A DNA stretch of 64,000 bases from Oikopleura dioica. Taxonomy: Eukaryota; Animalia; Chordata. The stretch covers positions 8,742,001 to 8,806,000 of the forward strand of contig OU015567.1 in the NCBI GenBank assembly GCA_907165135.1, written 5' to 3'. Position numbers and translations under genes: made by a program. Numbering within the stretch: position 1 is the stretch's first letter; every line of letters begins with the position of its first letter. Of the stretch, positions 2,615 through 33,600 are shown piece by piece. Under the pieces are notes generated by a model. It worked only from the letters and a program-made list of their open reading frames with translations, searched no databases and was not told where the DNA came from.

Positions 2615-5600
2615 ACTATGCGGAGGTTTTATGCGCTCTTGGGAAAGAATTTGAGTTCTGCGAAAATGAAATGGAAAAGTGGAAGAGCTCGGAAAACCGC
2701 AGAGGTACAGAAACTGTCACTATCAGTTACTCTGATTTGACGAATCGATTAAGAGTACTGTGAGCCTTTCTTTGCTTCTAGTCGCCACTTGTGTTTGCCC
2801 ATGACACTGAAAGGCACTGTAGCTGCCATTGAGTGTCCAGGCGCGGGATTACGCGCTAACAACTATCGATTAATGGGGTATTAATTCAATAATCCCTTGG
2901 AAGATTATCTGATGGTTTCGAAGCTCACGAATCAAACTTTTTCAAATGTTCATTATATTCAAATCGAATGCGGAACGGATCTTCTGTGGCGAATCGAGGG
3001 CAAAAGGTAATACGATTAGGATAAAAGCCCAAGCCATATTATCATTAACTCAAATTCAAATTAAAGAATATTACAAAAGATCGGAAATGAGTGGGATTTG
3101 AACGCTATTGGAGATGATCGACTGAAAAAAGGAAAGTTCAATCTATATAAACTACAGTATCAGAAGAAGGTAAAAACTGAGCTTCTTGAAGAAATGAACA
3201 AATGCACAAATGAAGCGCCTGTCGATCGCTATCGCCGAAATACCCAATTTTCGAATGAGACAGAATTCACTACGGAGCCTCCTCTTCCTCAAGCAGAATG
3301 CCTCGACAAAGAAATGTTCCACCACCAACCTTGCCGAAAAGACGCGTATGGAAAGATCACGTGCGACTGCCGCAACTTTAACTTTTGCGCTGAAGACTAC
3401 ATAATTCTGGTTGGGAATTCGATCTCAATGGTGCCATTGTTTCTCTCCATCGTGATTCTTTTTTCTTTTCCGTAAGTTCATTAATTGTACCGGCATTGTT
3501 TTAGAAAACCTGCTGCAGGTGCCTAATTAGATAGTTCGTTACTGTACCTGAGGTTTAAGCGGAAATTTCGTTCAGGCGATTGAGAAATACAAGAAATCTG
3601 ATCCATGCGAATCTGATGACTTCTTTGTTTTTACGCAGTGCGCTTCAATGGCTGAACTATCACGCTGTTATTTTCGGTGCTTATCCTGATGCGGAATGTA
3701 TGCTCAGTGTTCAGCACCTGAGCAAGGAGGAATACATGAGGATGACGCTGAAAATGTGTCCTGGAAGCCAGTTCATAGCTGTAAGTAGCGCTTAGCATGA
3801 GCTTTATGAGAGCTTTTGGGGTAAATTTGGCCAATAAGACATCAGTATGTTCTGGCTTAGCCAATCGCGGACCCCCTCACACGCTCAAATTCCAAAAAAC
3901 AGGGCTCGTCCGGGATTTGAACCCGGGACCACTCGCACCCTAAGCGAGTATCATACCCCTAGACCAACGAGCCACAAGGGATGAAAATCCATGGTACTAT
4001 TTGTACAGTCAGTTCCGGAAGTAGGTTGACTGTAATTAAATTTGTCTATTTGTACTCGCATCCTCGTGGCTCGTTGGTCTAGGGGTATGATACTCGCTTA
4101 GGGTGCGAGTGGTCCCGGGTTCAAATCCCGGACGAGCCCTGCTTTTTTTCTCGCTGATAATGGCGATGCCACCCCGAAGATCGAATTTTTCGCAAATTCT
4201 GAGAGGAGGTGTCGCTATAAGTTATAGCCTATGACTATCATTATCATTTAAGATCGGCAAAGATAGAATGATTTAATTTTAGTTCTGTCGCGCTTCTATC
4301 GTCTTTCTCCAGTGGGCAAAAACTGCCTCTCACTTCTGGGTCTTGATCGAAGGAAAGGTTCAACTGTTGTCGAGTGGGCGCAGTCCGCTTCATCCTCTTT
4401 CAAAGCAGCTTAGCAGAATGAACACAAATAAAAGGTGTGCAGTTGTACGCATTAGCGGTTGTGACTGTGCTCAGCACGGCTAAATACTTTTACGCGTACT
4501 TGGCATTCGGCTGGGGCTTTAGCTGGATATCCGTCGTTTTCTGGGTCGTGCTCAAGTACAAGTACGAGAATAGAGGCTGCTGGGATATCACTTACAGGCA
4601 AGTTCATCAATCAAAAAGCTTAAAAAGACACTTTTCAAAAGGGACCTGCTGGAAAAAGTGATAGAAGTTCCCATTTCAGCAGCAATCACATTGAACGGAA
4701 TTATTTTCATAATTCTCATCTGGGTTATTGTTCTCAAGCTGCGGGACGACTCTCGACTTACAAGGGAACGGAATAACGCACAGAGGCTTACAAGAGCCAC
4801 CCTGACGCTGATTCCGCTCATGGGTAAGTCTCCCATTTCCGGATGCTTCATCTGTTCGTTTTTTTTAGGGACGCAGTATCTTCTCTTCAGATATACGCCC
4901 AGTGAGAAACTTTTCAACATCAGATACAAATACGACCTCTTCTTTGAAGGACTTCAGGTAAAAAATTTTATCGAGATTTTTCGCAAAAGTGTTGAGGGTC
5001 TCTTTGTGTCTATTTTATTCTGCTTTATGAACCAAGAAGTCCAACGCGAGCTCAAGAAATGGTATAGCCGCCGAATGCAGCCTGTAAGTATCGACATCCA
5101 TTAGGATCAGCATGCTTAGGAGATAAAGGCTTTAAGCTGCATGATATTCTCTTTGTTATACGCATGCATTGAATATGTCTACAGGCACCATCTAGGCTTT
5201 GACGCACTTTATTAATGTTTTATCTGCACGATTTTGAATTGTCAACTGATCTATGTTCATCAAGTGACTAGAAAAAAGTTGCTTCAGATTTGCGCTGCTC
5301 AAATCCAAGGCTCATTATTAACCTTTGATAGCTCGACGGGCATCTGCTTCGACGAGGAACATTCGGCTCCGGCATCGAGGAAACCCTCAACACTAGAATT
5401 ATGGAGGGATACACGCCTAGGTCCTCCATCGCATTCGTTCGTAGTTCCACTGGGCAGACATCGTCGATAGAGAATGATTCCAATAGCATGTAATCTCTAA
5501 GGTGTAAATTAGAACATGAAACGCATTAAAAACAGGTTCTTTCATTGAAACAACATCAGAGCTAAAAATGGTCTAATCCGCGTTCAGAGAGGAGATCGAC

Positions 5601-5947: not shown

Positions 5948-7031
5948 TTATTGATTCGTCTGGAGTTTTCTCAAGAATTTTTTCTGTAAACCAGTGTAAA
6001 ACCAAGCGGATGCTCCAATTGCAGCGACAGAAAGAACTTTCAGCATAAAAACGCCAAGATTCTTGAAAAACTCGAGCTCAACTTCTCGCTTGAATTCTTC
6101 GTTCAGGATGAATTTTTCCATGAAATTTTCTCCTTTTTTCGTTTTGTTCACATGCTAAAATTGTGTAAATAAGTGTTCGTGAATAGCAAACAAACGGGAA
6201 TGGGAATATTTGGGACTTCTTTTCCGAGGAATTTGCAAAGCGGCTCCCAGCCATCTTTCACGTTCCAAATCAGAAGCCGATCTTTGGGCACAGTCCTGAT
6301 CACTCGTTCATTATGCTCTTCGTAGTACGCCTTGCTCTCAATCATCGAATCTCTGAAATTGGCCAGGTGCTGACTCGGCCAGAAAGCTTTCCATGGGGCG
6401 GGAAGAAATGGACCGTGTTTCTCCCAATTAGCTGTTCTCATCACGGACTTTCGGAAGCAATGGTTGCTTATCGCGAACTTAATTTTTTTGAAAAATAATG
6501 AGTTTAGAGAAGTCAAACCATTTGAAAGAATTTTCTTCCGAACCAGCCAGCGTTGTGGAATCTCTCATCAAGCCAGAACCTGTACGGATGCGCGTTGAAT
6601 TCCTTTTCAAAAAGTTTTCTAGTGTTTTTAATTTCGTTTATTCTTCATCGTTCGACTTTTTCCTGATCCATAAATCTGACGAGACTTCTGTTCCAAACAT
6701 CAACATTGTCCCTAACAGTTAAAATCACTTTCGCATTTGGGGACGCCTTGAAGAGTTCTTCCCAGTAAATGTTTCCCGGGTGGTCTTGATTTACAGTGTA
6801 TCCTCTGCTCGTGTACTCTTCTATGACCTGCTCAATGGGGACTTTTCCATCAATAAAATCGGTCCAAATTTGAGTCAGGTAAAAGAGTGTCTCTGGATAA
6901 TCGGCAACTTTGTATCCAAGCTCTCTTGAAAGGTGTGTTGAAATCAACAAAGAGAATTTTTGCTGTTACCTGAGTGCAAGAGAACAACTCTTCGTTGATG
7001 TTTTATTGATTCCAGCGCATATTATCTCCAT
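5948..7031 (-). CDS. P-loop sulfotransferase-family protein (Sulfotransfer_4-like), multi-exon
   Basis: N-terminal MEIICAGINKTSTKSCSLALR-ELGYKVAD; AKVILTVRD; C-terminal DRLLIWNVKDGWEPLCKFLGKEVP followed by a hydrophobic tail. Confidence 0.8.
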
Positions 7032-26431: not shown

Positions 26432-28994
26432 TTACTTTTGGATAAAGAACGGCGCCAGGCAAGATTTAGCCACTTTGCTTCGTAAAATAATATGTCTGCT
26501 TGCATTTATAAACTCATCCTGTGCCTCTATCGTACTTTTGAGGGCAGATTCCTTCATATCTCGTGGTTCTTGAATTATTAATCCCCCGGCATAGTCTACT
26601 CTCGCTTCGATTCGCCCTAAATGCAAATAAGTATTAATCAAAAAAGGATTTTTACCAGACATAATCAGTTGTATCACTTCATCGATCAAAACATCTTCGT
26701 CGCAGTCGAAAAAGTTCGACATTTTTGAGATGATCGCGCTTTGATAGGGCTAAAAGTCAACTTCAAATTTGGCATATTAGAAACATAACTTTTTATTTTA
26801 AAAAAGAAACTTAATAAGACCGGAAATAGCAAACAATCTTTGATCTTGGATATCAATTAATTGAAATTTGAAAGATTTCACTGACCAAAGACACTGTTTT
26901 TTTTATGTTTCCGACAACTGGGGAGTCTATGTTCTCCGACCAGAGAAGTCGCAGAGAGTCCCCCAGGGTACCAAAATGTAGCTAAGGGTCTGATCTGTGG
27001 CGTAGGGACACTGAGCAAATGTCAATGTCACGTGATCTTTGACAAATGACGTCATCAACCCGAATATACCCGATTTCGCCAATTTTAACCTCATATTGGG
27101 AGTCTATGTTCTCGGAGTACAATCATCGTACAGCGTCTCCAAGGGGCTCAAATGAGAGCTAAAGCTCTATTCTGTGGCGTAGGGGGGTTAAGATAATCTC
27201 AAGATATACTCATCCCTTTTTTATGGAGGGTCGAAAATGGCGTCGGAAACATAAAAAAAACAGTGTCAAAGAGTAACTACGATTGGTTTGGTCCGGCTGT
27301 AAGGAAGGATATATAAATAAAATGTATAGGATTAGTTTCAAATTTATAAAATGAAACAATTACTGCCAGGAAAATTTAGCTTGACCTAAAGTTAGAATAA
27401 AATCGTTACCTTTAAATAGTGAATCAAGCATTTCGTTCGAATCTCGCTGTAGAGATATTCCACGTGTGGCGACATAAAGTAATCGAGCCTCAAAATGTTG
27501 CGCTGTAACTCGAGATACTTGAGCGCATCGGAGTATTTGGACTCGACAAAGGCTATAAATACAATTTTCAAGTAACAGTAGTATCTTTTTAATAAAGATA
27601 TTGACGATTTTAAAATGTTCCTTTTACGACTGAGTGCGTCGAGGAAAGTCTTCTTACCGATAATTGCTTCACGCATGTTAGGCTCGAGTTCGAGGAAAAG
27701 TTTGAAAGAAGCTCCGTTGATCACAGTTTCTTTGAGCTCTTTTCTTGTCTTCAAAGCAAGATTCAACAACGCACCATACATTCCGAGGTCTTTTGGCGAA
27801 ATCAATTCCCTAGAAGAACAATTTCTTTCTTGAGAGCGATTTTCTTAAGACTTACGGATAGTGGAAGGACTCAAAGTCGACCAACAAAAACTGATTACTC
27901 GCTGCGAGGTAATTCTTTCGCTGAAGCTCTCCGAGAGCATTCGCGACGATCATTTTTCCCTTTGCCGCTGTGTCCTGGCATTCTTTTGCTTTTTGCGACT
28001 TGAGTTTTTCAGAATAGCTCGCGACATGGGCGTAGTTTCCCAACAAAACTAAATAAAGACAGGTAAAAGTTGAAAGAAATATGTAAATTCAAGTCTTACC
28101 AGATGTAGTGATGACGTTGAGACACATGTTGCGAATGTGCGTCGGCTGGAGACAGTAGTCCCTCGATTGGTAATAACATTTCAGCGCGCCGGTCAAATCG
28201 CCTGCTTTAATTTTATGTTCAGCGAGTTCTTCGTAGCCTCGTTTTATCGATTCCTTGAAAATTAATGCGCTCGTTTTTATTTTATTTCAGGCAATTTCGT
28301 ACCTTGATAGCGCTATTTTTATATTGTTTAATATCATTCTCCAGTCGGTCCGTGATCGTCGCGACTTGACTCGTTACAGTAGCAATCCAGCCTTCGCTAA
28401 AGCCATGATCGCGCTCTGGAAATCTCTTTCGCAGAATCGCGTGGAGCTGTCTGTACATTTCGACGTTGTAGGTCGACTTGACCGTTTTCAAGGCGACTTG
28501 GGTTGTTTCGTAAACTGATTCTGCCGAGTGATCGATGATGAATTTCAGGCGGCGCAAAAGTATAGTGCCACGGTAGATGGACGGGTACGCATCAATGTCA
28601 ATTGTGGACGCGCCAGTGATCAAAAATTGAGTTACATCCTCCTCAGAGTCTGACTCCATTCCCTCCTGCTCCTAATTTGATCAATTAGCATACTGTTAGT
28701 TCAGACTTATTGTAGACGAGATTTTGTGTAATTAAAATATGGTTTTTTGATTGGTTCTACTGCAATTTCGATCATTTTGATTGGTGAAAATAAAGAAAAA
28801 ACCCGTAGATAAGTTAAAGAATCAGTAAAATATCGTACCATTTCTGTTGATTCTGAAGTTGCCCCTGATCCTACAGTTTCAGAAGAAGAATTTGATTCTA
28901 GCGGCGTGGGAATCACCGTATTGCTTTCACTAAATCGAACAGATCTTAGTGGTTCCTGAGGCATCAGATCTGGTAGGACTTCCATATCGCCCAT
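26432..28994 (-). CDS. GPS1: COP9 signalosome subunit 1
   Basis: IDAYPSIYRG...LKFIIDH, QKLENDIKQYKNSAIK-type segment, KDLGMYGALLNLAL, FKLFLELEP, PCI end IQLIMSG-RIEARVD; ORF 28707-28994 supplies a phase-0 first exon (donor at 28838). Confidence 0.9.
26891..27266 (+). mobile_element. 376-bp non-autonomous TIR element, copy 1, inside the CSN1 intron 26750-27409
   Basis: Perfect 25-bp TIR ACACTG-T8-ATGTTTCCGAC; CAAAG duplicated at 26886-26890 and 27267-27271; internal ~87-bp repeat at 177-bp spacing. Confidence 0.9.
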
Positions 28995-30654: not shown

Positions 30655-33600
30655 TCACGAAGTGGGACGGATCTCGCCGTTCTGCGAGTGTAGAATAATT
30701 TTCTCGAGCTTCGACAGGATGTGCTTGCCGTACGTGAACCTCTTCAAATTGGACACATGGGGCTTCATCTTTTGCACCATTTTCTGGCGCTGGGCGGCAT
30801 CGCCCATGTCCAGCATTTTCTGGACGACGTAATTCGCGAATTGATCCTAAATTGGCAAGTGAGCTACAACAGTGTGAAATTTAGCGCCTGAGGGCAACTT
30901 CGCGGGCGCTTTCTACTACGACTCTGTTAACTCGTTGGCAACAAGCCCACCTGTTTTGTTATTTTTGTATATTCATTTCAATATGTTATCTTATTTTCAT
31001 ACCTTCATCATGATAAAGAGACTGTCAGGATTCTGACAGACCTCTTCGATCAACGCTGCTCGTTCAGTTCTATTCGACGTGGTCACACATTTCTCAATGA
31101 CATTTGAAGCGAACTTGTGCTGAGAAAGGGTGACGATGCGGCCCATGACGGCGCGCAGGATCATCTGCCTGTCTTCCATTTTGCCGCGGTTCAGGATGTG
31201 CTGGATCACATAGTTTCCGTACTGATCTTGGATCAACATTTCGTGGTTTTTGTGGATTTCCTGAAATGTTTTTCATTATTTTCTTCATCAAAAATGTACA
31301 AGAGATCCCTCTGCGGAATCCCAAAATATGACACTTACCTCCATAATGGGCTTGTACTGTTCCTCCGTACAATGCTCGAGTATTCTCTGCACAACTCTGC
31401 AGCCATAAGCATGCGTAGAAAGACCAACCACTTGGCCATTGAAAGCAGAGATGATAAACTCTAAGTTGTCAGCAGGAAGACATTCAATTACTTTTTGAAT
31501 CACGTGATTTCCATTTTGGTCCTTGACACAGCGCAGTATCGAGTTTTGCAACTCGTTTACGATGATCATTTGTTGTTCCTAAGACAAGCGTTTTCGACCG
31601 TATTTAGCTTGTTTTCTTTACCTGGTTGAGAGATTCTAGCGCTTTCTGAATCACTCTGCATCCGTACATCTGAAGCGATAACTGCAGAACTTTTCCCTTG
31701 ATATTATCGACAATTTGTTGCTTTTGCTCGGCGGTGCCGAATTCCAGGAACTTCTGGATCACGTAATTTCCAAAAACGTCAATGATCAACTGGTACGAGT
31801 GGGAAATGATTTCGTTGAAGACTAATTGCCTGTCGGACGGATTGCAACGCTCGAGTTTTTGTTGAATAAAGCGAGATCCATGCTGGTCTTGGCTGAAAAG
31901 AAAAGATTATGGGACGGTGATAGGGTTTTTCTCACCTAAATTCGACCATATGGTTGAGCAAGTCGCGCAGCTGCGGATTGGTAAGTCGGTTGTTTCGGAA
32001 ATCTTCCAAAAGCCTTGATCTACCAGAAAGTCCATCGAAAGAGCCCATAGATCGGGTAGCTGGGAAGCCGAGGGAATTCGAGCTGTATCGGCCAGAATCG
32101 CCATGTGCCAAACCCAGGCCGAAGGTATTCACGCCAATTGGTGGCGGTGGAGTAACAAGATCTAAAAGAAATGTAGACAGAAGTTATTTTCATTCTGTAT
32201 GGCTTACCTGGCCCAGGGCTTGTGATTCCATTGTACATGACCCCAGAGTTCGATCGCATGTGCAAATTATACTGTCCCATTCTTGGATCAGAATCCCTCC
32301 TCGGTACGTGATGCGGCGACTGCAAATTCGGCGACGTCGGATTACCTTCGTTCCCCAAGCCAAAGCCGGGTGTCAACCATGGGCTCAGAATATTTCCCGT
32401 GCCTAATGAGTTCTGCGACTAGATTTTTGTTTCAAAAGCTATTAGGCTCAATGAGATACATACGGGAATGAGCCGAAGTCGGGGGTCGATTTGAGGAGCA
32501 TTCAGATTCTGATTCAGGCCGTAGAGACTTTGTTGATTTTGCAACTGCGAAGCGAGATTCAGCGGATTTGAGAGAGCACCGAGGTTGGTTTGATTGAAAC
32601 CGGGCACGGACTGCATTGACAGGTTTTTTTTTATATTGCACAAGCAATTTTCGGGTCTCTCTAGAAAAGGGATGAGCAAGTCACATGACTTTGAAACTCA
32701 TTCAAACAATAGTTTGGAACCCTAGCTACATTTTGCGCCATTTGGGGAACCTCCACGATATCTATGTTCGGAGTTATTAGACTCCCAAAATTGAGCCGAT
32801 ATTGGAAAAATCGGCGAGTTCGGCGTCGATGACGTAATTTTTCATAGATCACGTGATCGAAAATTTCCCATATTACTTCAAACAATAGGTCAGACCATGA
32901 GCTACATTTTGAGCATTTTTGGGGCATTCTACGATATCCCTATTCGGAGTTATTAGACTCCCAAGCTTTGTGCAATATAAAAAAAAACCTGTCATTGGAT
33001 TTGGCATGCCAGGCATTGAGGGGCCCATAGACGATGGGGGAAATTGCTGATTGTACAAAGACATGTTTAGCATGTTGTTTTGCTGGGAAAGCGCTGCTGT
33101 TTGAAGCTTAGACAGATGTAAAGATAGAAAAACTGGACTTTAAGCACCTGTAAAAGCTGTAGCTGCTGAATTTGTTGGTAATCTTGAAGCATTGGTGGAG
33201 CACCAGGATTCTGGCCTACAAGGGGATTAGGGAGCTGAACTCCAATATTGGGGTCTTTCACGAGACCTGGCGCTTCAGGTGGCTTAAGTCCTCCATCCGC
33301 CCATAAGTCCGCTTTATCCATCCCATTCAGAGCCCATGTCTTGTTGACGGCATCGCCGCTGTTGTTCGGATTGTGCTCGTTCGCCCAGGCCGTGGAGGGA
33401 ATCTGCCCCGTTTGAGCCCCGAGACTTTGGGGCATCTGCTGCGGCGGGGGCCAGTTGCCTGGAGAAGGAACGGGCTGCTCAAATCGGCCACCAGATGAGT
33501 CAAATTGACTTGAAGGCATCGTTCCATCGTTGGCCGACCAAATTCCTTGGTAATCATTAGGCTTGGGGTTTCTTATTATTGAAGTCTTACCTTCACTAAC

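Follow-up and report, generated by a model that had tools for sequence, protein, structure and literature searches.

A recently mobile family of short non-coding inverted-repeat elements in Oikopleura dioica, with 3-bp target duplications and a possible affinity to PIF/Harbinger transposons

The triplet TWA (TTA or TAA) is the characteristic target of PIF/Harbinger transposons (PMC13668399). Their published TIR motif is G(N)5GTT, found within consensus TIRs such as GGGKGYGTTTGTTTG, and VNTR-bearing derivatives of these elements are known (PMC2213677). All characterized members show a target preference extending beyond the 3-bp TSD (PMC2836001). For Harbinger3_DR, the target is the palindrome AAACACCWGGTCTTT (PMC3016246), which shows that PIF/Harbinger triplets other than TWA occur. 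Duplications of 3 bp are also listed for Academ (PMC5199201), and Zator-1 of amphioxus duplicates TAA or TTA (PMC12905397). Canonical Sola2 elements generate 4-bp AT-rich duplications (PMC3627910).

We analyzed a 378-bp element of Oikopleura dioica, bounded by perfect 26-bp TIRs, at positions 26890-27267 of a 64,000-nucleotide stretch of genomic DNA, hereafter the window. The explanation that we favor, at somewhat better than an even chance, is a non-autonomous cut-and-paste DNA transposon (MITE), moved in trans most likely by an enzyme of the PIF/Harbinger type. The features of the locus, in window coordinates, are the following.

26432-26722, minus strand: next host ORF downstream, from the ORF list, with its reading frame judged by eye
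26887-26889, no strand: left 3-bp flank AAA (TSD), on the basis that the 3-bp flanks match in 29 of 30 family insertions
26890-26915, plus strand: left TIR GACACTGTTTTTTTTATGTTTCCGAC, 26 nt, 100% complementary to 27242-27267
26921-27007, plus strand: internal module 1 (GGGAGTCTA ... CAAAATGTAGCTAAGGGTCTGATCTGTGGCGTAGGG), kept in all subfamilies
27029-27054, no strand: conserved central spacer, with CACGTG at 27029-27034 and TGACGTCA at 27047-27054
27098-27187, plus strand: internal module 2, repeating module 1 in direct orientation, 177 bp downstream
27209-27220, plus strand: conserved CTCATCCCTTTT block close to the right end, from the 19-copy alignment
27242-27267, minus strand: right TIR, complementary to the left TIR
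27268-27270, no strand: right 3-bp flank AAA (TSD), on the basis of flank identity in 29 of 30 insertions
27395-27805, minus strand: CSN1 (COP9 signalosome subunit 1) host exon, lying upstream of the insertion, by phmmer against PDB CSN1 chains, E 2.6e-17
32618-32993, minus strand: second, diverged copy, of subfamily D, about 63% identical, TSD ATT flanked by C and G

The TIR arms are separated by 326 nt, and the flanks read CAAA/GACA...TGTC/AAAG, where slashes mark the junctions. The perfect TIRs and the flanks reported by the initial annotation are therefore confirmed, the two arms being 100% complementary. The same holds for the internal duplication that it had described: the exact 16-mer GGGAGTCTATGTTCTC occurs at 26921 and again at 27098, giving the spacing of 177 bp, and, over an 87-bp alignment, modules 1 and 2 are 72% identical (E 2.6e-8). 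An Rfam scan of the element returned nothing relevant. Since the host exon at 27395-27805 matches CSN1 and is followed by the ORF at 26432-26722, this copy sits in a CSN1 intron, as had been proposed; the element occupies the intron between that exon and that ORF. Exon 27855-28046 gives a weak RPN7 domain match, and the ORF at 26432-26722 taken alone has no match in PDB. Protein searches with CSN1, and with the transposase of L059, one of the long-TIR elements considered below, were run exon by exon. The second copy in the window, at 32618-32993, indeed lies in the opposite orientation and has a different TIR (GACAGGTTTTTTTTTATATTGCACAA); its flanks are CATT/.../ATTG. The sister copy of the family lies within a coding exon of Pumilio.

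At least 30 independent insertions, distributed over five chromosome-scale contigs and every one with a different flank, were identified in the O. dioica assembly. They bear out the suggestion of a genuine multi-copy TIR family, and segmental duplication of all copies is unlikely because all flanks differ. About seven subfamilies can be distinguished, in which changes are matched in both TIR arms. According to the identity matrix, four copies of subfamily B are mutually 99% identical, and identities within subfamily A range from 87 to 99%. The 99% identity reached in some subfamilies indicates recent movement. All subfamilies, with no exception, have GACA as their first four bases, and the ends of the family are always GACA...TGTC, inside perfect 25- to 26-bp TIRs. 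Aligning 19 copies shows conservation from one subfamily to the next of the two modules, of CTCATCCCTTTT, and of the spacer with CACGTG...TGACGTCA, so that the internal repeats, spacer motifs, and near-end motif initially noted as shared by two copies are features of the family. The central-spacer motifs are kept, or almost, even in subfamilies whose overall identity is only 60-66%. Long members, of 1.1 to 3.7 kb, carry a 56-bp minisatellite of 13 to 50 units and no gene, and their two subterminal regions are both homologous to module 1. No ORF was found in the family, the long members holding minisatellite arrays only. These elements have the characters of MITEs: they are short, bounded by TIRs, flanked by TSDs, dispersed at unrelated sites, and non-coding. 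They form a real orphan MITE family, recently mobile and with no visible enzyme source.

The initial annotation had proposed looking for long elements with the same TIRs and a transposase gene; no such autonomous partner was found in this assembly. The genome was searched with TIR patterns of 19 nt, allowing one mismatch, and of 14 nt, exact. Genome-wide, the inverted TIR pairs all correspond to short copies or minisatellite carriers, none of them surrounding coding sequence, and single pattern matches are as numerous as in the control. Looking for a partner by subterminal similarity retrieved only further minisatellite carriers (L055-L058). A scan of metagenomes with the TIR pattern returned 119 contigs with one match each and no added BLASTN similarity, which we regard as chance matches. 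A Tc1/mariner-like ORF located 1.3 kb from a family end, at L054, was rejected as a partner. Telomere-like repeats and a 56-bp array lie between this ORF and the family fragment, which is a truncated long member, and, in the pattern lists, no family TIR is placed close to any other copy of the ORF. Searched exon by exon, the genome contains zero matches to PF13359 (DDE_Tnp_4), the type of transposase that autonomous PIF/Harbinger elements encode alongside a Myb/SANT-like ORF1, and zero to PF04827 (Plant_tran), a type of search that a very divergent or intron-rich gene could escape. The CACTA domain Transposase_21 (PF02992) likewise has no match in the genome, in a search run without a positive control. 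Copies that are 99% identical require a recent enzyme source, and the searches recovered none.

Of the 30 independent insertions, 29 have a perfect 3-bp TSD. The TSD is preceded by C in 29 and followed by G in 27; one base further out, there is a weaker preference for G and C, and the surroundings are A/T-rich. The duplicated triplet is W-N-W, mostly A-N-T (e.g., AAA, AAT, ATT, and ACT), with G or C at its center in 8/30 insertions. The CWWWG target inferred by the initial annotation thus holds as a strongly constrained pentanucleotide, but not in its middle, which is W-N-W. The 3-bp and 5-bp readings of the duplication, previously judged equally good, are not equivalent: in four insertions (L007, L011, L047, and L056), three of which (L011, L047, and L056) belong to young subfamilies, the outer flank base is not C/G and GACA...TGTC is intact. 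Over the 30 insertions, mismatches amount to 1 in 90 middle positions versus 4 in 60 outer positions. Outer flanks other than C/G next to intact end bases indicate a duplication of 3 bp and a target C/WNW/G. The TSD is 3 bp at C/WNW/G, not at a strict CWWWG, and the question of 3 versus 5 bp is largely resolved.

A duplication of 5 bp (CNNNG) with ends ACA...TGT, produced by a Transib-like or other 5-bp-duplicating enzyme of absolute C...G specificity, is in our view highly improbable. This reading equals the 3-bp reading in 26 of the 30 insertions, and the TIR holds CACTG or CAGTG, reminiscent of the recombination-signal heptamer. However, it fails in four insertions, in each of which the mismatch is in the outer base, the base next to the element being unaffected; an element starting at CAC... 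leaves no abutting duplication; the RAG1/Transib domain PF12940 has no match in the genome (in a search run without a positive control); and elements of the same genome with the same GAC ends show unambiguous 3-bp duplications. Membership in Transib itself is not supported, since we found no 5-bp duplication, no CAC... termini abutted by one, and no match to the RAG1-like domain. The flanks also exclude a 7-bp duplication with CAC... ends, and the GACA termini and the lack of a Transposase_21 match speak against CACTA/CMC membership. The earlier statement that the family matches no known superfamily was too strong, as its TSD, TIR motif, and target preference resemble those of Tourist-like PIF/Harbinger elements. 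TIRs such as GACACCGTTTGTTTT, GACAGTGTTTGTTTT, and GACACTGTTTTTTTT, and those of every subfamily except D (GACAGGTTTT), fit G(N)5GTT, a fit that is short, in a T-rich context, and recognized post hoc. Judged by the ends, the TSD length, and the extended target preference, the leading candidate for the mobilizing enzyme would be one of the PIF/Harbinger type, an attribution to which we give rather less than an even chance. The attribution is unproven, given that TWA, the usual duplication, is lacking (TTA or TAA in 0/30 insertions) and that no matching transposase was found.

Two other sources of the enzyme were weighed against the PIF/Harbinger type. The family might have been moved by, or descended from, the autonomous long-TIR elements (4.5-4.9 kb) of the same genome, which we consider quite unlikely. 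These are the only autonomous elements with a 3-bp TSD found in the genome, and their intact-looking copies are mutually 98-100% identical. Their ends start with GAC (GACGAWTTTCAATAAG), and their TSDs are unambiguously 3 bp long: among the 23 listed elements, 21 pass the TSD check and only L186 truly fails, the TSD of L059 being TTA. Their TIRs hold TGACGTCA at 120-290 bp from each end, in two cases with an adjacent CACGTG, and both motifs are likewise conserved in the center of the MITEs. The candidate partner encoded by these elements is a multi-exon ORF with no Pfam match, whose last exon resembles DUF7869 proteins in the protein atlas. However, the TIRs cannot be aligned past GAC, GACACTGTTTT and GACGAATTTCA having only their first three bases in common. 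According to the Repbase rule, non-autonomous elements agree at positions 1-11 of the termini with at most one mismatch (PMC4455052); the family and the long-TIR group do not. Moreover, the order and spacing of TGACGTCA and CACGTG differ between the two, no copy of the long-TIR transposase lies between GACA[CG] ends, and MITEs of about 590 bp that carry exactly the ends of the long-TIR group are abundant. Target flanks in this group are T (11/23) and A (12/23), versus C and G in the family, which argues for a different enzyme. The other source would be a transposase lineage that is undescribed or missing from the assembly, belonging neither to PIF/Harbinger nor to the long-TIR group and using a target of the C-A-N-T-G type; this we regard as unlikely. 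It is consistent with the lack of any coding member of the family, with the lack of genome matches to PIF/Harbinger, CACTA, and RAG1 domains, and with the combination of a non-TWA duplication and near-absolute C..G flanks, which is the documented signature of no superfamily in the literature searched. Against it, little weight attaches to a partner missing from a single haplotype-merged assembly, MITEs without a partner are common, and each feature taken singly has a PIF/Harbinger precedent; in addition, Academ, Zator, and CMC also make 3-bp duplications and are assignable only with a protein. In its full form, this proposal holds that an undescribed lineage, distinct from both PIF/Harbinger and the long-TIR (DUF7869) group, recognizes GACA ends, makes 3-bp duplications at a near-obligatory C/A-N-T/G, and is still active in O. 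dioica populations despite its absence from the assembly, which is unlikely.

The genome of O. dioica is among the smallest and fastest-evolving animal genomes. Its introns turn over rapidly, and small DNA transposons are candidates for generating new ones. The exact ends of a MITE, the length of its duplication, and its target motif are needed to judge for which insertions removal from RNA would be scarless. For one family, these parameters are now fixed: the ends are GACA...TGTC, the duplication spans 3 bp, and the target is C/WNW/G. As for mobility, a transposase dimer supplied in trans would bind the TIRs, and probably also the conserved subterminal modules, excise the element, and cut a twofold-symmetric target with a 3-bp stagger. 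In PIF/Harbinger elements, excision is habitually precise and takes one triplet along. As the searches recovered neither a coding element with these ends nor such a gene, the source of this enzyme would either be missing from the individual or the assembly, or differ from the sequences searched for. An undescribed MITE family is by itself routine, and the element is of an ordinary kind; a young family without a visible enzyme source offers a concrete aim for searches across populations and assemblies.

The family shares its 3-bp duplication length with Zator, Academ, and CACTA/CMC. Among these three, the comparison of termini covered CACTA; the Zator and Academ transposases have no Pfam model. 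Unlike CACTA elements, whose ends start with CACTA, the family has GACA termini, and a start at CAC would give no abutting duplication. It also differs from canonical Sola2 in duplicating 3 bp, as does the long-TIR group. With the latter, the family has in common the host genome, GAC...GTC termini, a 3-bp duplication, and recent activity, but the lengths differ and the internal modules are not shared. The closest resemblance in our preferred reading is to Tourist-like MITEs (mPing/Ping-Pong, mPIF/PIF, Medicago MtPH, and zebrafish Harbinger3_DR). Unlike these, the family duplicates a W-N-W triplet and not TTA or TAA, its ends begin with GAC where theirs begin with GG or GY, and a DDE_Tnp_4 transposase was not found in this genome. 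Like them, it has a 3-bp TSD, TIRs starting with G(N)5GTT(TG), and a strong, approximately palindromic target preference reaching past the duplicated bases, and its elements are short, AT-rich, and non-coding, with tandem-array derivatives.

The copy studied here, a second member of its family and the exons around them are arranged in the window as follows:

26432-26722, next downstream ORF of the host gene
26890-27267, MITE copy in the CSN1 intron, 378 bp
27029-27034, CACGTG, between the two modules of this copy
27047-27054, TGACGTCA, between the two modules of this copy
27209-27220, CTCATCCCTTTT, in this copy
27395-27805, minus strand, host exon, PDB match to COP9 signalosome subunit 1 (E = 2.6e-17)
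27855-28046, host exon, weak match to RPN7
32618-32993, second family copy, in the opposite orientation, TIR GACAGGTTTTTTTTTATATTGCACAA, flanks CATT and ATTG

The 26-nt ends of the CSN1-intron element (GACACTGTTTTTTTTATGTTTCCGAC) are perfectly complementary and are flanked by CAAA at the left and AAAG at the right. The 16-mer GGGAGTCTATGTTCTC, found at positions 26921 and 27098 with a spacing of 177 bp, opens two modules that are 72% identical over 87 bp. The structure proposed in the initial annotation was confirmed throughout (TIRs, flanks, internal repeat with its 177-bp spacing, spacer, and right-end block), as were the opposite orientation and differing TIRs of the two copies. As the element lies between the downstream ORF and the CSN1 exon, in protein searches of spliced genes run exon by exon, it resides inside a CSN1 intron, of roughly 650–700 bp. 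It looks like a neutral passenger in a pre-existing intron. The sister copy, of 376 bp plus a 3-bp TSD (ATT), splits a minus-strand ORF that is continuous as read by eye (...GMPNPM / ...). As the 379 bp gained by insertion are not divisible by 3, the gene is broken unless this copy is removed exactly. Elsewhere in the window, an inverted repeat at 3894-4147 (86 nt, 98% complementary, 82-nt loop) probably represents a further small foldback element.

Whole-genome DNA and pattern searches (19 contigs totaling 64,281,565 bases, with five contigs of megabase scale) yielded many further copies, bearing out the proposal of a multicopy TIR family. About seven subfamilies are distinguishable by their TIRs:

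Subfamily A: GACACTG-T8-ATGTTTCCGAC
Subfamily B: GACACCGTTTGTTTTATATTAACCC
Subfamilies C and G: GACAGTGTTT[TG]TTTTATATTGCAC
Subfamily D: GACAGG-T9-ATATTGCAC
Subfamily E: GACAG[TC]GTTT[TA]TTTTAAAT
Subfamily F: GACAGCG-T8-AAATGGG

Left and right arms agree within every subfamily, and the alignment shows the GACA start and TGTC end to be invariant in all of them. Identity is 60–80% between subfamilies and 87–99% within subfamily A, and four copies within subfamily B are 99% identical to one another. Internal-deletion derivatives measure 310, 291, 97, and 58 bp. Conversely, the E-type members reach 1.1–3.7 kb: the family ends enclose an array of 13–50 units of a 56-bp minisatellite (L046:880-2800, L055:958-3744, L056:901-3232, L057:1045-2614, and L054:3540-3900), without any ORF. 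In these members the subterminal modules of the left and right ends face in opposite directions, whereas the two modules of the 375-bp members are direct repeats. The minisatellite core is a GGCCC-GAA-GGGCC hairpin. Because units are 99% alike within one array and their variants differ from locus to locus, the arrays expand or homogenize after transposition. Independent flanks and young copies demonstrate the mobility of this family, which is real, young, and orphan, and of a known general kind.

The flanks had been reported to read equally well as a 3-bp or a 5-bp TSD. At CNNNG targets the expected empty site does not differ between the two readings, and the deciding cases are insertions with an outer flank other than C or G. 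We compiled 30 independent insertions, counting once L052 and L053, which are the same locus on a haplotig. In 29, the three bases adjoining the element match between left and right; the preceding base is C in 29 and the following base G in 27. In four insertions the outer base departs from this pattern, with the G and C ends of the element intact:

L007, C-AAG ... AAG-T
L011, T-ACT ... ACT-G
L047, G-AAA ... AAA-G
L056, C-TAT ... TAT-T

A 5-bp TSD would need four later substitutions, one at each of these loci and every one in the outer copy, an outcome with a probability of 1 in 16. L011, L047, and L056 belong to subfamilies just 1–2% diverged. Set against a single mismatch in 90 middle positions, the four outer deviations give a one-sided Fisher p of 0.08. 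The ambiguity is thus largely resolved, through these four insertions, in favor of a 3-bp TSD and GACA...TGTC ends. In element orientation the target reads C, A (26/30), N, T or A (28/30), G, with a weak G and C outside the C...G and then A/T-rich sequence. It is a twofold-symmetric site, for which the initial CWWWG motif proved too narrow, G or C occupying the central base in 8 of the 30 insertions. We have hence shown the end structure, TSD length, and target motif of the MITE.

Long members of the family do exist, but none carries a transposase. Whole-genome pattern searches revealed no coding sequence between inverted pairs of family TIRs; single TIR-pattern matches equaled the control count, and metagenome contigs gave only chance matches to the pattern. 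Searches of the whole genome with Pfam profiles found no match to DDE_Tnp_4, Plant_tran, Transposase_21, or RAG1; the last three are weaker negatives, as DDE_Tnp_4 alone was positive in a control genome. A Tc1/mariner-like transposase (HTDE..., ...WPAHSPDLNPLDF motif) is present at L054:1244-3192 (minus strand) and G000 C5:1194719-1195681, without a Pfam match up to E = 0.1. A 749-aa open frame contains one copy, and paralogues on C1, C4, and C5 are 42–54% identical. At L054:3346-3540, an internal position of the 2.9-Mb contig C3, telomere-like CCCTAA repeats are followed by a AACCCATATTGCACC-type satellite.

The genome also harbors autonomous long-TIR elements of 4.5–4.9 kb with GAC ends, here called the L059 group (putatively Sola2-like):

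L059, 4.9 kb, ends GACGAATTTCAATAAG, TSD TTA
L063, ends GACGATTTTCGATAAGG, TSD TTT
L065, ends GGCCAATTTCAATAAGG, TSD CAC
L204, further located element

The L059 family comprises three copies 98–100% identical. The multi-exon gene of the group has no Pfam match, and a protein atlas placed its last exon among DUF7869 proteins. A scripted check for 3-bp TSDs was passed by 21 of the 23 listed elements; L059 has TTA, and L186 is the sole true failure. Related MITEs of about 590 bp, with GACGAWTTTCAATAAGGATTTC ends, a clean 3-bp TSD, and T..A-biased flanks, are abundant (G000 C1:2052279-2052866 and many others, L185-L201); their pattern gave 764 matches at up to two mismatches, versus 166 for the control. 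L064:2156-6648 is itself nested within another inverted-repeat element, with outer arms at 2010-2134 and 6658-6782 (125 nt, 92% complementary). Both arms of the L059, L063, L064, and L065 TIRs carry TGACGTCA 120–290 bp from each end, adjoined in two of these four families by CACGTG, as TGACGTCAtNgCACGTGATTGAAGT. This CRE-like plus E-box pair, which could be a promoter or binding site, recurs at the center of the studied MITE, although in a different order and spacing. However, the ends cannot be aligned with those of the MITE past GAC, and the target flanks of the listed L059-group elements are T (11/23) and A (12/23) instead of C and G. These distinct target signatures argue that a separate enzyme moves the MITE family.

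We propose that the MITEs would be mobilized by cut and paste through a DDE/DDD enzyme that acts in trans as a dimer and makes a 3-bp staggered cut at the symmetric target. The invariant GACA and the T-run would provide its end-proximal contacts, and the conserved modules, CACGTG, and TGACGTCA are putative additional sites at which the enzyme or a host factor could bind. Within each subfamily, the matching changes of the two TIR arms may reflect several slightly different master elements or one end having been copied from the other.

Maize PIF has a preference for CWC-TTA-GWG, and in the zebrafish Harbinger site the central CWG is the duplicated triplet; in both, C would precede and G follow the duplication. 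Published descriptions of PIF/Harbinger report a 3-bp duplication, TIRs starting with a conserved G(N)5GTT (consensus TIRs include GGGKGYGTTTGTTTGAGGGTT and GYRYGTGTTTGGTT; PMC2213677), and, for all characterized members, a target preference past the duplicated bases (PMC2836001). The target of zebrafish Harbinger3_DR is the palindrome AAACACCWGGTCTTT (PMC3016246). Similarly, the TIRs of all our subfamilies except D fit G(N)5GTT (GACACCGTTTGTTTT, GACAGTGTTTGTTTT, and GACACTGTTTTTTTT), and the C...G flanks extend the preference past the 3-bp TSD. The E-type 56-bp minisatellite carriers parallel the Medicago PIF/Harbinger derivatives packed with a 60-bp VNTR (PMC2213677). Conversely, the characteristic TWA triplet (PMC13668399) occurs in none of the 30 insertions, and the Pfam-profile search of the genome did not find the PIF/Harbinger transposase. 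The ends and target therefore narrow the superfamily, for which the initial annotation had no match, toward PIF/Harbinger without closing the assignment: membership is unproven, and the family is Tourist-like in build and landing.
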